Assembly: GCA_950097015.1 (NCBI GenBank) | Contig: CATNEN010000002.1 | Location: 4,836,001-4,900,000 of the forward strand | Length of the DNA: 64,000 nucleotides | From: Macrostomum hystrix | Taxonomy: Eukaryota; Animalia; Platyhelminthes | Direction of reading: 5' to 3' | Part shown: positions 586 to 34,179 of the stretch, one piece after another | Numbering within the stretch: position 1 is the first letter of the stretch | Layout of the letters: each line of letters starts with the position of its first letter | Made by a program: the position numbers and the translations under genes | The notes under the pieces: generated by a model | Database searches by the model: none | What the model was told of the DNA's origin: nothing | The model's input: the letters and a program-made list of their open reading frames with translations, nothing else

Positions 586-1587
586 CATCGAATCCAGCGC
601 GGCCATCGTACGGCTCTGCTCTGAGGCCGGCCGTGGACCATGTCTCCGCTGGTCGTCTCTGTCGCTACCCGACCATCGCGCTGCTGCAGCCAGATCCAGT
701 CTCGGAATCGCACATTCCTAAAACTTTGCTTCAGGATCTCAAGCGGGATATTTCTCCCAACAGCTCGTCGCCATGTCACGTGGTTCATGCAGCCTCTCCT
801 GGTCGAGGCGGAGATGAGCTTCGTGTCAGCACTAGCTTCCTTGAGAAGCGGATGCTCAGAAGCCTCACCACTCTGCAAGGTCAACTGTTCATTACACTCA
901 AGTACCTGGTCAAGAAGGTGATTTGCCACAAAGACTTCTACAATGTGCAAGGTTTGAAGCCGTATCACGTGAAGACAATCACATTCCGAATGCTGGAGCA
1001 AACACCCGCTGACGAGTGGAAGCCGGACAATCTCGTCAGTCTCGTGAGGCGGTCGCTGGAGATGCTGCTTGGTTGTGTTGAGAGCGGCTGCACATCCGGC
1101 AATACGCATGGGCGGATAATGGAGCACTTTTTCCTGGCTGACGCGGCTCTTTACCTCAAAGGTATCAACCAGAAAGAGTCTGAGAAGATTCTGAGCAATA
1201 TTGCAAGCACATTGAGAAAAGTAATCGATAAGCTGCCTCAGCTGCTGCTCCAGTTTGTGCGCTATCTCAAGCCCTTAAGTGAGTCTGGCAGGTTCTACTT
1301 CCATCCGTTTCAAATCCTGCCAGATATCAGGCCATTGCCCGTGACAATGTCGGGCAGGCTCGAGTATCACGGCATCTACGGTGTAGCAAGGGAGTGCATA
1401 CTGCGACTCTCGCATAAAGACTGCAGCCTGCAATCTCAAGAGAGTCTCACGGAGTTGATCGCGAGACTGCCAGACTGCGCCTTCACGGCAAGAGAGGCTC
1501 TCAGAGCGCTGGCGTGTCTCAAGTTCGGCTACCGAGGGACAGCGGAGAAAATCTTGAGCCAGTGCAGGCGCCACTCAGTGAGCAGAG
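586..1587 (+). CDS. cGAS-like receptor (Mab-21/cGLR nucleotidyltransferase) paralog 1, internal exon; 5' exons lie outside the window
   Basis: Acceptor CCAG at 582-585 gives a phase-1 entry homologous to the paralog acceptor at 30614. Translation has PAVDHV (third catalytic Asp region), LRVSTSFLEKRML, KPYHVKTITFRMLE and MEHFFL, matching the cGAS/Mab-21 motifs WRLSFS.EK, SYH.KT and .NYF. Colinear with 30615-32074. Confidence 0.85.
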
Positions 1588-1591
1588 GTAT

Positions 1592-1973
1592 GGATAGTAA
1601 TAATAATAATAATAATAGTAATAATAATAATTGCAGCAGGGCTGCGGGCAATGGCACAACGCTTGGTGATACTAGACCCGCAGCCAGCGAGGAGGCAATT
1701 TAGCCATTTTCGCTGACTCCTGAGCACACCCGCACACAGATAGTGTACGCAGGAATACGCTCACACAGGTGTGTACATCTGCCCTGACTTTCTAATCGCC
1801 AGGCGGTGTACACTTTCACCGTTCCTTGGAAGTTAGCCCTATTATGGGCGAAAGCCTTGACAAGCCTTCTCGCTGCGACAGCGCCCTAATTTAATGTGAC
1901 CTCGTCGCGGAATCGAGCTCAGGGACGTTGGCGCGAGAGACAAACGCGTTAACCACTCTGCAATTCACCCCCT
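1592..1973 (-). mobile_element. tRNA-derived SINE (family A), antisense, filling intron 1588-1975 of cGLR1
   Basis: Minus strand begins AGGGGGTGAATTGCAGAGTGGTTAACG (A box) ... GAGCTCGATTCC (B box) and ends in a (TTA)n tail. Flanked by TSD AGGTAT at 1586-1591 and 1974-1979. Homologous to 15285-15646 and 22447-22624. Confidence 0.9.
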
Positions 1974-1975
1974 AG

Positions 1976-2421
1976 GTATTGATTGGTCGTTTGATAGATC
2001 GGCGACTGAGGCCACAGTGCAATACGTGTGGCAGCACCTGCAGAGCAGTGACAGCGCGTGGAAGTTCTGCTTTCAGTTCGGGACGCGACCGGAACTCCAA
2101 TTCGTAGCGGGACCCATCGCGAGCTGCTTTCCACTGTCAACACAGACTTACGAGGATCATTTCTACATGAACTTCGACGCACTCATGTGGGCGATGCGTC
2201 TGGAACTGCGAGGCGGCTGCGACCAGCAAAACGCGGAGGCGTGGATTCGAGGTCTGGCCACGAGAGAAGACGCCGACTATCAGGAGCTCCTCGTGGCGAT
2301 TTCCTACTGCTTCGATTTTGACTGCACGAAGGCGCTAATGGAAAAGCTGCACAGCCTCAATGGCAGTGTTCCTGATTGGCTGAAACAGGAGCTCAGAAAG
2401 AGGTGGCCAATCAAAAACTGA
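1976..2421 (+). CDS. cGLR paralog 1, terminal exon (C-terminal extension)
   Basis: Joining 1587 to 1976 restores [35 protein letters not shown], matching paralog [35 protein letters not shown]; stop TGA at 2419-2421. Confidence 0.85.
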
Positions 2422-15284: not shown

Positions 15285-15646
15285 AGATAGGGGGTGGTGG
15301 CAGAGCGTTTGCTTCTCGCACCAATGTCCCTGAGCTCGATTCCGCGGCAAGGCCACGTTAATTTGGGGCGCAGCCACGGAGAGAAGGCTTGGGGGCTTGT
15401 CGTGAAATTTACGCCCATGTGAGCCCACCTCTAAGGCACAGTGAAAGTGTACACTGCCTGATGATTAGAAAGTCAGGGCAGATGTACACTCCCCGTGTGA
15501 GCGTGTGCCTGCTTACGGTATCTGTGTGCGTGTGTGCTCAGGAGTCAGCGAAATGAGGAGAATTGCCTCGTCATCGGGAGAAAAGCTGCGGGTCAAGTGT
15601 CACCAAATTATGTTCCGTTGCCCGCTGCCCTCCTTCAAATATTATT
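15285..15646 (+). mobile_element. tRNA-derived SINE (family A), sense copy
   Basis: AGGGGGTGGTGGCAGAGCG...GTCCCTGAGCTCGATTCCGCGG, shared body AGAAAGTCAGGGCAGATGTACAC, (ATT)n tail; 13-bp TSD ATTATAGTGTTTA at 15272-15284 and 15647-15659. Confidence 0.9.
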
Positions 15647-16419
15647 ATTATAGTGTTTACGATTCATTGGAACTGGCCTTGACCTCACACACATACACAT
15701 ATGGAGTCCTCTTTGATCCCAGCCAAATATCCTTCAATCAGTAGAGTTTGCGAGAAAGGTAGAGAGTGAGAGAGAGGGGTCGGACTCCAGCCGCTGATCT
15801 CTAGTATAGGAGGGCTTGTCGGATATGATCCCATCTGCTGAGCATAGCTGAGCACATCAATACTTTAAGAGCTCGGGCTTAGTCACAGGGATGTAGAGAT
15901 AGAATGAAAGGGATAAAAAATTCTCCTATTTTTTTTTTAGATTCGGCAATTTTTCCCAGGGATGACGACTGAGTCGCTCCGTTTCATTTGCTAGTCCGTG
16001 TTCGTGCACGGATTTACATTAATTTCTGGAAGAAATGTAGGGCTCATTTTTTATCGACGGCTCGCCTCAACAGCTTATTTGGGCGCTGGGACGCTATTTG
16101 GGACAACAATTTCCATAGGGATTTCGATTAGAAAGAGGACGAAAATATTGACGCGTTTCAATTTTTGGGATTAAATGATCCTAAACCAGATTATTTTTTT
16201 ACCTGAGATGCAGATGCGGAGGAAATTAAAACTTGTTTCATTGTTTTTAATTATGAAATCAAAAAAGAAGCTTTATTTAACTCTTTTCACTCAGTCACGA
16301 CAACTATTTTACTGGAATACATAGTGAAACGAACTATTCAAAATCATTTTGATTTTTCCTTTAGTGAGAACCCAATACCTCACAGTATCTAAATGTTTTT
16401 ATGATGTGTACAATCCACA

Positions 16420-22446: not shown

Positions 22447-22624
22447 ATACGCTCACACAGGTGTGTACATCTGCCCTGACTTTCTCATCATCAGACAGTG
22501 AACACTGTGCCTTGGAGGTTGTCCCTCATAGGCGAAAATTGCACGACAAGCCAACAAGCCTTCTCTCCGCGGCTGCGCCACAAATGAATGTGGCCTCGCC
22601 GCGGAATCGAGCTCAGGGACCTTG
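22447..22624 (-). mobile_element. Truncated SINE family A copy
   Basis: ATACGCTCACACAGGTGTGTACATCTGCCCTGACTTTCT...GCGGAATCGAGCTCAGGGAC shared with 1755-1925. Confidence 0.85.
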
Positions 22625-29909: not shown

Positions 29910-30614
29910 GTGAGAATTTCCTGCCAGAGACTGTCGGGATGGCCGGGACAAGAATTGAACATGTGTTTGGCTTAGTGAATCTTGTCTTTAAATGAAACAG
30001 CAATCGATAAAAAAAGTAACAAATTTTCAATCTAGACAGGCAATTCCAGGCAAAATGGAGAGTTGGAATTTAGTTTCTGATTTCGCTTCTTCTGCTAAGC
30101 AAGCAGAGGCTTAGCACCCTGTACTAAGTAAACCATGATGCCATAGGATACTTTCTCTGTTTCGTAGGTTCGCTATGATTTCACAGTCACATCATTGCAA
30201 CAACGGCTCATGTAAAATTGAAGGATTTGAAAGAAAGAAATAAAGATAAGAAGAAAGAAAATTGAAGTTTATACACACCAGTTGGCAAATTCATCATTGA
30301 CTAAATCCGGAAGTCAGTGCAAATTAGAGTTACCCATCACGCCCACACCTGCAACAAATCCTAATAAACCGAAGGTATACAAAGAATAAATTTGATTTAT
30401 ACTCTAAATGCTTTTGATCCTTACCTTTATAGTTAGCAAATCGTAGCACTATTTTTTCTGTTTCGATTTTTTGCACCTGTTTGCAGATATAGTAAAATAC
30501 CAAATAGTATTCAAAAATTAAAAAAATATTTTCAAAGATTTTCAAATGTTTTAAAAAATCTGATTTGTAAGCTAATGGCATTTTCTATATTTCTCGAATT
30601 TCCCATTTCTCCAG

Positions 30615-32074
30615 CCTCCAACCCAGCCATTACACAACCTGGATCCACCCTGAAACCGGCTGTGGACCTTGTCACCGCCCGCCGCCTCTGCCGCTACCCT
30701 CCCATCGCGCCGCTGCAGCCACCAAGAGTCTCCAAATCCAACATCCCCCAGTCCGTGCTGCAGTCGCTCGAGCGAGATATTAGCTCTCCCTCATCGCCCT
30801 GTCACGTGGTGCACGCAGCTCCTCCCGGAATGGGGGGCCAGCAGCTCCGAGTGAGCAGCAGCTTCCTGGAGAGGCGACTGCTGCGGAGTCTCAGCACTCT
30901 GCAAGGCCAGCTGTTCGTCACACTCAAGTGGCTGCTGAAGAAGAAAATCTCAAACGTCGGCTTCAAGTCCTATCACGCGAAGACCGTCACGTTCCGAATG
31001 CTGGAGGAGACACCGGCTGAGCAGTGGAAGCCGAAGAATCTCGTGAGTCTCACGAGACGCTCGCTGCAGATGCTGCTCGACGGTGTGGAGAGCGGCTTCA
31101 GATCAGACACACCTGACGGTCGGATCCTGGAGCACTTCTTCCTGAGCGATGCCGCTGTGTACCTGAAAGGCTTGAAGTCGCCCACATCAGCTGAGAGAGT
31201 GAGCGAAGCGTTGAATCGGGCAGCCGGCGCATTGAGAGACGCCATGGCTGAGCTGCCTCAGCTGCTGCTGCAGTTCGAGGACAGTCTGCGACCCGTCACC
31301 GACTCGGGCCGATTCCGATTCCACCCGTTCCTCATCCTGCCGTTTCTCAATGACCGACCCGTGTCAGAAGCCAAGACATGCGAGTTCCACGATATCTACG
31401 ACCTCGTGAGAGAGTCGGTGCTTTGTCTGTCCGATGGAGACCGCAGTCCGCAGTCCCGAGAAAGTCTCACAGAGCTGATCGACAAACTGCCAGACTGCGC
31501 CCGATCAGTGCGAGAGTCTCTCAGAGCGCTGGCGTGCCTGAAGTTCGGCGACCGACTTAGTGCAGCGAGAGTTGTGAGCGACTGCGGGCCGCTCAGTGCG
31601 AGCAGAGGCATCGATTGGGGAGCTGAGAGGTCGGCGAGTGAGGCCACTGCGGACTTTGTGTGGCAGCACCTGAGGAGCCGAGACTCCGCCTGGAAATTCT
31701 GCTTCGCGTTTGACGAGCGACCGAAGCTGCCGATTGAGCACAAAGTCTTTGTCGACTGCTTTCCGCTGCAGATGGAGAACAGCAACAAACACTTCTACCT
31801 GAACTTTGACGCCCTGCTGCGGGCTCTTCGCAATGAGTTGTCAGGAGCAGGAGACGAGAGCGATCAGGACTGGATCCGGGACGTGGCTCAGAGTAAGGAT
31901 GCGGACGAGCAGGAGCTGCTGGTGGCTGCGGCGATCTGCGAAGATCTGGAGCTGCTGCGGCTGCTGCGCAGAAGAATAAGGCAGCTGTGCCGGCTGCCGG
32001 GGTGGCTGCAGCAGAAGATTGAGAGGCTGAGCAGTCAAGGCGAAGATCGCCAAAACCAAATCGGATTGCGTTGA
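30615..32074 (+). CDS. ANK-cGLR exon 3: Mab-21/cGAS-like lobe plus C-terminal extension
   Basis: Acceptor TTTCTCCAG (phase 1); [39 protein letters not shown]; stop TGA at 32072-32074. Three-exon join is 6492 nt = 2163 aa plus stop. Confidence 0.9.
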
Positions 32075-32186: not shown

Positions 32187-32895
32187 GTTAATGGGGGGTT
32201 AATTGGAAGTGAGACTTTCAGTTAATGGCCAAGGCCACGAGCGGCGATTAGCCGCGAGTGGCAATTTGGCCATTGTTCGAAATGTCACTTCACGTTAATG
32301 ACATCTCTGTCATAGACAACTGCAGTTAATGACAAGTCTCTTACCTCCCTTTCGCACATAGACAAATCGATCAATGCAGCTAATTGGAAGTGAGACTTTC
32401 AGTTAATGGCCAAATTGCCACTCGCGGCTAATCGCCGCTCGTGGCCTTGGCCATTAACTGAAAGTCTCACTTCCAATTAACCCCCCATTAACTGAAAGTC
32501 TCACTTCCAATTAACCCCCCATTAACTGAAAGTCTCACTTCCAATTAACCCCCCATTAACTGAAAGTCTCACTTCCAATTAACCCCCCATTAACTGAAAG
32601 TCTCACTTCCAATTAACCCCCCATTAACTGAAAGTCTCACTTCCAATTAACCCCCCATTAACTGAAAGTCTCACTTCCAATTAACCCCCCATTAACTGAA
32701 AGTCTCACTTCCAATTAACCCCCCATTAACTGAAAGTCTCACTTCCAATTAACCCCCCATTAACTGAAAGTCTCACTTCCAATTAGCTGCATTGATCGAT
32801 TTGTCTATGTGCGAAAGGGAGGTAAGAGACTTGTCATTAACTGCAGTTGTCTATGACAGAGATGTCATTAACGTGAAGTGACATTTCGAACAATG
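32187..32895. repeat. Interleaved inverted repeats X-Y-X'-(34-nt)n-Y'
   Basis: X 32187-32274 is the reverse complement of 32405-32492; Y 32271-32409 is the reverse complement of 32757-32895; ~10 copies of ATTAACTGAAAGTCTCACTTCCAATTAACCCCCC at 32453-32785. Confidence 0.9.
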
Positions 32896-33090
32896 AGAAG
32901 CAAACTAGGAGACACATTTTAATTAATGCATTTCCTGATCGAATTTTACGTTGGAGACAAGGATGGATATGGCATAACAAAGCTGGCTCTTGACCACTAA
33001 AATTCTTCAGGCGAAAAACCACCTCTAGGGCCAGTGACCATCGAACTTCAGGCCAGTGACCATCGAACTTCAGGCCAGTGACCATCGACA

Positions 33091-33812
33091 ATCCCGATCC
33101 CAGATCCCGATCCCAGATCCCGATCCCAGATCCCGATCCCAGATCCCGATCCCAGATCCCGATCCCAGATCCCGATCCCAGATCCCGATCCCAGATCCCG
33201 ATCCCAGATCCCGATCCCAGATCCCGATCCCAGATCCCGATCCCAGATCCCGATCCCAGATCCCGATCCCAGATCCCGATCCCAGATCCCGATCCCAGAT
33301 CCCGATCCCAGATCCCGATCCCAGATCCCGATCCCAGATCCCGATCCCAGATCCCGATCCCAGATCCCGATCCCAGATCCCGATCCCAGATCCCGATCCC
33401 AGATCCCGATCCCAGATCCCGATCCCAGATCCCGATCCCAGATCCCGATCCCAGATCCCGATCCCAGATCCCGATCCCAGATCCCGATCCCAGATCCCGA
33501 TCCCAGATCCCGATCCCAGATCCCGATCCCAGATCCCGATCCCAGATCCCGATCCCAGATCCCGATCCCAGATCCCGATCCCAGATCCCGATCCCAGATC
33601 CCGATCCCAGATCCCGATCCCAGATCCCGATCCCAGATCCCGATCCCAGATCCCGATCCCAGATCCCGATCCCAGATCCCGATCCCAGATCCCGATCCCA
33701 GATCCCGATCCCAGATCCCGATCCCAGATCCCGATCCCAGATCCCGATCCCAGATCCCGATCCCAGATCCCGATCCCAGATCCCGATCCCAGATCCCGAT
33801 CCCAGATCCCAG
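33091..33812. repeat. Near-perfect 13-nt array (CCCGATCCCAGAT)n, ~55 copies
   Basis: Direct inspection; preceded by 3 copies of a 23-nt unit at ~33028-33088. Confidence 0.97.
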
Positions 33813-34179
33813 ATCTCAGAGCTAACCCAGATCTTAGCGTTGAAATTTGTTTTTAATTTTTGTATATACATTGTTTAGTTTTGTACATACTTTGTCTGCT
33901 TCATATTTGCCTGCACCTGGCACTAATGCCCACCATTGCACAGTTTGCTGCTTAGTTTTCATGCTTGGTATTTAGTTTTTATAATGTTTTTATGAAATAT
34001 TTTGGTTTGCTAACAAGCCTCTGTAAAACTGTACTTCTAGCTTTCAGTGTATTTGGTTGAAGTGACCGACTGCGATTGCCAGACACGAATCCTCACAATC
34101 AGCTGACAGATGGTGCCAAATCCCTACTCGAATCAGATCCCAAAACCAGACTCACGAACCAGAATCCACAACCAGAATT

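Follow-up and report, generated by a model that had tools for sequence, protein, structure and literature searches.

An antisense SINE insertion predicted to be spliced out as a new coding-region intron of a cGAS-like gene in the flatworm Macrostomum hystrix

The stretch of DNA analysed here, hereafter the window, comprises 64,000 nucleotides of the flatworm Macrostomum hystrix (GenBank assembly GCA_950097015.1, contig CATNEN010000002.1, positions 4,836,001 to 4,900,000 of the forward strand). The beginning of the window contains the 3' part of an ankyrin and cGAS-like (Mab21/cGLR-type) gene, which we call paralog 1 and which has four coding parts (Table 1). The last coding exon of this gene is split by a short interspersed element (SINE); the piece upstream of the element (586-1587) is referred to as exon 2, and the piece downstream of it (1976-2421) as exon 3. 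The SINE retroposed in antisense orientation into this exon and duplicated about 12 bp of the target, AGGTATTGATTG. From the sequence of the locus we predict, with a probability of roughly two in three, that the insertion is spliced out of the transcript as a new intron, 1588-1975, the splice dinucleotides of which would come from the duplicated target and the internal signals from the element. A second member of the same gene family in the window, paralog 2, is uninterrupted at the equivalent point. Coordinates without a prefix are positions in the window, and a slash within a motif marks a proposed exon-intron boundary.

Table 1 Features of paralog 1, of the SINE insertion and of the uninterrupted counterpart in paralog 2.
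Feature	Position	Strand	Remarks
Ankyrin open frame, 800 aa	L031:5591-7993		Paralog 1, coding part 1
Exon with nucleotidyltransferase motifs GS and DID	L031:8538-8882		Paralog 1, coding part 2
Coding exon upstream of the SINE (exon 2)	586-1587	+	Mab-21 C-terminal lobe; 3' end is the G of a split Gly codon
Competing donor-like site TCA/GTGAGC	1578-1583	+	10 nt upstream of 1588; out of frame with acceptor 1975
Left duplication copy, AGGTATGGATAG	1586-1597	+	Contains the proposed donor AG/GTATGG, GT at 1588-1589
Proposed new GT-AG intron	1588-1975	+	388 nt, phase 1, 50% GC
SINE, antisense to the gene	1598-1973	-	Tail and body, inside the last coding exon
SINE tail	1598-1630	-	(TTA)11 on the SINE strand, one unit interrupted; (AAT)n on the + strand; TRF period 3, 12.7 copies
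SINE body	1631-1973	-	82-84% identity to 40 scored genomic copies
In-frame TAG if the SINE is retained	1701-1703	+	Open reading frame 633-1703
Branch-point-like TTAAC	1949-1953	+	A at 1952, 23 nt before the acceptor
Pyrimidine-rich tract	1954-1973	+	15/20 pyrimidine; from the antisense 5' end of the SINE
Right duplication copy, AGGTATTGATTG	1974-1985	+	AG 1974-1975 is the proposed acceptor; the remainder encodes G-I-D-W
Downstream coding exon (exon 3)	1976-2421	+	147 codons and TGA at 2419-2421; family-specific C-terminal domain; in-frame, open
Uninterrupted counterpart in paralog 2	31601-31618	+	AGC AGA GGC ATC GAT TGG; AGGC, so no GT

The coding parts of paralog 1 carry the typical features of a cGAS-like protein. 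The nucleotidyltransferase exon reads VGSYSEGWGN...DIESDIDV (within L031:8540-8881), in which the GS ... [DE]x[DE] active-site motifs of a putative nucleotidyltransferase are present. The acceptor of exon 2, ctaccag/CA at 585/586, agrees with the position of a phase-1 intron in the paralogs, and exon 2 itself matches the Pfam family Mab-21_C (PF20266) with 29 bits and an E-value of 1.2e-6 (cut-off 24.1) and shares 58-67% identity with intact paralogs. A structure model of the closest intact paralog (mean predicted local distance difference test score, pLDDT, 81) resembles MAB21L1, the cGLR1 proteins of coral and oyster, and cGAS (Foldseek probability 1.00, E-value about 1e-3, 180-210 aligned columns). 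The part of this model that is equivalent to exon 3 forms a confident separate fold (pLDDT 75-92), and a profile search of the exon 3 domain returned no Pfam match. Judged by this confident fold, truncation would deprive the protein of a real domain. The family is large: two pieces of paralog 1 gave 118 and 122 genomic matches, corresponding to more than 118 paralogs, and in over 100 of these (nearly all of the matches) a single open frame of 450-600 aa spans the site at which paralog 1 holds the SINE. The best protein matches come from M. lignano, at 66-67% identity.

The insert at 1598-1973 is a SINE, as its copy number, its tail and the varying duplications of its relatives demonstrate. A first look at the whole genome returned at least 2874 candidate copies, and the 40 copies that were scored are distributed over many contigs and are 82-84% identical to 1631-1973. 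The element is dispersed and non-coding, with a body of about 343-349 bp. Aligned copies begin with a G-rich segment, after which come GCAGAGCGGTTAACGCG and GTTCGATTCC, similar to RNA polymerase III (Pol III) A and B boxes, and terminate in a (TTA)n tail; in young copies this tail is accompanied by exact target-site duplications of 10-17 bp, which differ from copy to copy. The earlier note on this DNA had labelled the element a tRNA-SINE, and this label holds in part. In its favour, the consensus contains the A-box-like GCAGAGCGG and the B-box-like GTTCGATTCC, and ARAGORN with relaxed settings recovers a tRNA-Glu-like fold in the paralog 1 copy, although not in the consensus; against it, neither standard ARAGORN nor Rfam detects a tRNA in the SINE. 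On these motifs a tRNA origin of the family is plausible.

Two more diverged copies of the family are present in the window, at 15305-15650 and 22447-22624. The first is an old copy, about 87% identical to the consensus and in sense orientation on the + strand, with a 13-bp duplication (TAAACACTATAAT); its surroundings are apparently non-coding and it is without the splice-site arrangement described below. At another locus, the SINE head by itself is present three times in tandem, as units of 56-57 nt (L009:1330-1499), directly upstream of a full-length copy, which is followed by a second, diverged copy (L009:1872-2124).

The target-site duplication was previously read as 6 bp, AGGTAT, which is indeed found at both 1586-1591 and 1974-1979. 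A duplication of about 12 bp, in which 1586-1597 and 1974-1985 are identical at 10 of 12 positions, is the better reading, because the next six bases match at four of six positions (chance about 0.04), because the SINE tail then ends on a whole TTA unit and because the other duplications of the family are 10-17 bp long. Both differences arose in the left copy, since the right copy retains the I-D-W codons of the family. One of them, a change from T to G, affects the +5 site of the proposed intron, at which the consensus base is G; it may have strengthened the donor after the insertion, and a single change of this kind proves nothing. AGGT occurs at this point in paralog 1 only, which uses the synonymous codon GGT, the other paralogs reading AGA GGC or AGA GGA.

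Removal of 1588-1975 gives ...AGC AGA G/GT ATT GAT TGG, which encodes the family motif SRGIDW exactly and in frame. In comparisons with 19 uninterrupted paralogs and with M. lignano proteins other than model P0009, a single residue, that of the split Gly codon, is left between the end of the upstream piece (x) and the beginning of the downstream piece (x+2). The claim of the earlier note that excision restores the reading frame without gain or loss of a residue is thus borne out against these proteins, as is its statement that paralog 2 has no intron here, 31601-31618 being located within one open frame (30575-32074). The 19 aligned paralogs and most of the M. lignano homologues are continuous at the SINE point; the exception is a single M. 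lignano model, P0009. This model, which is the closest M. lignano match to exon 2, skips 19 residues that read VSRGIAWSREKSATEATVE in near-identical relatives, and its gap, at residues about 418-424, falls exactly where paralog 1 carries the SINE. The gap could stem from a deletion, from an intron that was modelled wrongly or from an insertion at this very point.

We propose the following mechanism for the removal of the SINE. As the duplication starts with AGGT, its left copy would supply the donor AG/GT, and its right copy would supply the acceptor AG directly after the antisense head of the element. The antisense head would in turn contribute TTAAC, 23 nt upstream of the AG, together with a C-rich tract. 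The spliceosome would then excise the SINE along with one copy of the duplication (1588-1975, 388 nt, phase 1) and rejoin the original codons exactly. The constituents of this arrangement, i.e. a SINE in antisense orientation, an AGGT within the duplication, a donor in the left copy, an acceptor in the right copy, and a branch-like site and pyrimidine tract derived from the SINE head, are all located where the earlier note had placed them. The origin of the internal signals can be traced to the family: TTAAC at 1949-1953 corresponds, on the opposite strand, to the GTTAA of the A-box-like GCAGAGCGGTTAACGCG of the SINE consensus, and the consensus head, GGGGGTCGGTGGCAGAGCGG, gives a similar pyrimidine tract when read antisense.

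The interval 1588-1975 agrees with the U2-type consensus in having GT, AG, a branch-like site within 18-40 nt and a pyrimidine tract, which is a consensus match only. In a comparison of 48 in-frame GT...AG pairs, a pyrimidine tract together with a branch-like site in range was seen for no acceptor other than that at 1975, and the best in-frame donor for this acceptor is 1588 (GAG/GTATGG). For comparison, the genuine phase-1 intron of the family has the donors G/GTGAGT, G/GTGAGA, G/GTAAAT and A/GTAAGT, acceptors of the type (Y)nCAG and a length of 75-1700 nt. It is conceivable that the transcript is spliced, but not only at 1588/1975, so that alternative donors yield a mix of productive and unproductive mRNAs. 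Donors at 1597, 1618 and 1666 are in frame with the acceptor at 1975; the first two of these belong to the (AAT)n tail, and their use would lengthen the protein by 3 or 10 residues, and the site at 1578 is of the GTGAG type seen in the real donors of the family, but is out of frame. We regard such mixed splicing as improbable, given that 1597 and 1618 (ATA/GTAATA) lack G at both -1 and +5 and that 1578 lacks the exonic AG. The GTG AGC codons at 1578 are ancestral and are present in the sister paralogs.

The age of the insertion determines how much can be read from the state of its flanks. The SINE copy in paralog 1 differs by 15.2% from the consensus of young copies and by 14.4% from one built from 20 older copies. 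It has the diagnostic bases of the older copies, along with a single insertion and a single deletion. The divergence is 8-12% in the head and the 3' half and 26% in the centre, and without the odd central segment the copy is 10% from the consensus. We therefore used two values, 10% as the cautious one and 14.4% as the overall one. Among 56 sampled copies this copy is the most diverged, bar one that is about equal, and the 2/12 difference between the two copies of the duplication agrees with either value. Judged by this decay, the insertion is old. The opposite view would be that the insertion is young, i.e. a recent copy of an already decayed source, or that it is an assembly error, in which case the intact flanks would be uninformative. 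The uneven divergence could stem from an unusual source copy and not from decay at this site. Searches of the 220-Mb genome with the whole element and with its central part, however, gave identities of at most 84% and 78%, respectively, to any other copy, and two further points speak against a recent event: the duplication copies have come to differ, and one unit of the tail is interrupted. As to an artefact, the M. hystrix assembly consists of 42 PacBio contigs from an inbred line, with 220,453,370 bases (PMC10468722). A young or artefactual insertion is therefore hardly credible to us.

All coding parts of paralog 1 are open, i.e. the ankyrin frame of 800 aa, the nucleotidyltransferase exon, exon 2 and exon 3, amounting to about 4 kb of coding sequence. 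We compared this state with neutral decay by simulation, in which the present exon was mutated at the divergence and with the substitution spectrum of the SINE, and frameshifts were introduced at the indel rate of the SINE. At 14.4% divergence, 4.5% of runs left exon 3 without a stop, and at 10% divergence, 10% of runs did so; with frameshifts added, the exon remained open in 0.5% and 2.7% of runs, respectively. Exon 2 survived in 0.5-2% of runs, and in fewer than 0.2% with frameshifts. The odds for exon 2 and the open ankyrin frame together indicate that the gene as a whole cannot have drifted since the insertion, and a pseudogene extending over the entire gene is excluded in practice, with about 4 kb of coding sequence still open. 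Gene conversion, which might have kept a dead gene open, was considered and rejected: the nearest paralog is 33% different in protein, and the synonymous divergence (dS) is about 1.

Exon 3 also resembles its intact counterparts in the residues that it keeps. Compared with 13 non-redundant relatives, it retains 13 of the 14 columns that are at least 90% conserved and 20 of the 21 that are at least 80% conserved, as the intact members do. At 14.4% divergence, where a loss of 29% would be expected, retention of 20/21 has P = 0.007; at 10% divergence, a calculation by hand gives about 0.05. The nonsynonymous divergence (dN) of exon 3 between paralog 1 and its sisters is 0.43-0.54, compared with 0.39-0.48 among the intact sisters; the corresponding values for exon 2 are 0.23-0.26 and 0.25-0.31. 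The branch of paralog 1 in the tree is like the branches among the intact sisters, with no acceleration and no sign of relaxation. Purifying selection on 1976-2421 had been put forward as a check on the intron, and the exon behaves as expected under such selection, being open, having kept 20/21 conserved residues and showing no excess dN in rate tests of low power. Taken together, the open frame, the retained residues and the rates indicate that exon 3 is probably still translated. Translation of exon 3 in turn requires that the SINE be removed from the RNA. Splicing thus gains indirect support: despite the age of the insertion, the coding sequence is open on either side of it, and exon 3 has retained the residues conserved in the family.

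Several observations weigh against the predicted intron. The earlier note had described the intron as perfect, which is overstated. The donor GTATGG departs from the GTGAG/GTAAG type that the genuine introns of the family use and is, by its sequence, a mediocre one, acceptable but not strong; GTGAGC at 1578 could compete with it and would shift the frame; and the insert is 50% GC, in contrast to about 33% in the other introns of the gene. The age estimate is derived from a consensus of 56 sampled copies and the divergence is uneven along the element, and the relative-rate tests (branch and dN) have low power on branches as long as these. No M. hystrix protein was among the matches when the paralog 2 frame, exon 2 and exon 3 were queried separately in protein word searches, which returned M. 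lignano proteins at no more than 67% identity, or nothing. With more than 118 paralogs, moreover, loss of one copy would be tolerable.

Most of these points would fit a plain disruption of the gene, in which the SINE is retained and translation adds about 38 residues from the SINE before stopping at the TAG at 1701-1703, or in which the mRNA is degraded. Exon 3 may on this account be a relic that is open by chance, in a gene that is either a pseudogene or works without its C-terminal domain. The mediocre donor, the competing donor at 1578, the exon-like GC content and the lack of an M. hystrix protein match in the searches are all in keeping with such a disruption, as is the redundancy of a very large family, some members of which are visibly defective. 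At two other loci (L026 and L030), moreover, long open reading frames (ORFs) are interrupted by young copies of this SINE that have no AGGT in their duplications. Against this stand the probability of 0.005-0.1 for an open exon 3 at the divergence of the SINE, the 20/21 conserved residues kept by exon 3 and the absence of excess dN. We therefore consider plain disruption unlikely, and favour the splicing of 1588-1975 as a new intron.

If the SINE is indeed spliced out, part of this capacity may reside in the element. The earlier note had suggested that the property is intrinsic to this SINE family, and here a distinction is needed. TTAAC and the C-rich end belong to the family consensus, so every antisense copy brings a branch-like site and a pyrimidine tract; GT and AG, on the other hand, come from the target and need an AGGT in the duplication. 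We estimate that AGGT would fall inside a 12-bp duplication by chance in a few percent of insertions, and selection would retain AGGT-flanked copies in exons. The distribution of signals that characterises introners, i.e. elements that generate introns repeatedly, is found at this locus, with the branch-like site and the tract provided by the SINE head and GT and AG by the duplication. Introner status, in addition, requires many introns in unrelated genes from one family, and the paralog 1 insertion is a single case here. Among about 60 sampled SINE copies no other AGGT-flanked exon insertion was found. It is a tentative idea, and to us a doubtful one, that this family, or M. hystrix SINEs as a whole, might act as an animal retroposon introner, in which every antisense insertion with AGGT in its 10-17 bp duplication could be spliced at once, and that such insertions have repeatedly given rise to coding introns.

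Long ORFs span three of the sampled SINE copies (L026, L027 and L030), and none of these was accepted as a second case. L027 was rejected as an exon-splitting SINE because its spanning ORF lies in simple repeats. L026 and L030 were rejected as SINE introns because both elements are inserted in sense orientation and neither duplication includes AGGT. The copies at L026:1502-1851 and L030:1522-1871 are young, 97-98% identical to the consensus and in sense orientation; excision would leave frames of 618 aa and 435 aa, respectively, and their duplications (ATTATGCACTTGT and AACATCGCC.CGAG) are without AGGT. Both probably inserted recently and disrupted a gene or a transposon ORF.

The surroundings of the family provided some further observations. 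Contigs C1, C3 and C18 carry many of the ankyrin and cGAS-like matches, arranged in tandem clusters. Internal stops or halves that lie apart are seen in a few members; in the one at C30:1123812-1129757, for instance, the halves are separated by 4.7 kb and could hold other insertions. Much of the phase-1 intron of paralog 1, from the nucleotidyltransferase exon to exon 2, is occupied by a 20-nt tandem repeat (unit TACTGTGTATCAACTAACAT, 98% matches) of about 1.07 kb, which covers L031:9150-10000 and positions 1-216 of the window; the equivalent intron in the sister paralogs L075, L076 and L077 is about 75-100 nt only. Just 3' of paralog 2, a long 33-nt tandem repeat at 32837-33878 has several frames open on both strands and reads, for example, GSGIGIWDRDL, about 25 times.

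The origin of new spliceosomal introns in animals is poorly documented; the large introner surveys found almost none there, and those found were mostly DNA transposons. The present locus displays the full anatomy expected of a retroposon-born intron: the element, its orientation and the duplication that would give both splice dinucleotides. A synonymous GGT codon made AGGT available in paralog 1 only, more than 100 uninterrupted paralogs serve as natural controls, and the insertion can be dated from the decay of both the element and the duplication. Should the junction be real and the same SINE family make other introns, M. hystrix would become a tractable animal model of retroposon-driven intron gain. 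Should the RNA read through, the locus would amount to a single disrupted gene in a very large family of the immune type.

Comparable events are known from other systems. A SINE-born intron in a coding region has been reported for the rice catalase A gene (cited in Sela et al. 2007, PMC2394776). As that case is described in the citing paper, it is alike in that a SINE inserted in a coding exon became a spliceosomal intron of that gene; it differs in concerning a plant gene, whereas paralog 1 is a flatworm gene in which both splice dinucleotides come from the duplication and splicing is predicted from the sequence. Intronization of Alu elements in last exons has been described in four human cases, all in 3' untranslated regions and all alternative (intron retention), with splice sites located inside the Alu or made by mutation (Sela et al. 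2007, PMC2394776). There, as proposed here, an exonic SINE activates splice sites to give a new intron, and antisense SINEs are good sources of pyrimidine tracts (PMC2394776). Unlike the Alu cases, the insertion in paralog 1 is in coding sequence, and its removal is needed for a complete protein. Among classified introner families, about 82% are DNA transposons with terminal inverted repeats (TIRs) and 5% are non-long terminal repeat (non-LTR) retrotransposons (Gozashti et al. 2025, PMC12130899). The survey of 2022 found introners in two animal groups only and does not refer to flatworms in its text (Gozashti et al. 2022, PMC9860276). Introners and the paralog 1 insertion have in common that the signals are shared between element and duplication, that the intron consists of the element plus one copy of the duplication and that the targets are of the AGGT type; they differ in that introners are mostly TIR DNA transposons, whereas the insertion in paralog 1 is an old retroposon and a single case. 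In the sh2 gene of maize, the transposon Ds, when located in an exon, is reportedly spliced out via sites at or near its ends, this being a DNA transposon with imprecise splicing. The mechanism proposed for paralog 1 is therefore already known in its outline; what is uncommon is a case in the coding sequence of an animal in which both splice sites would derive from the target-site duplication.

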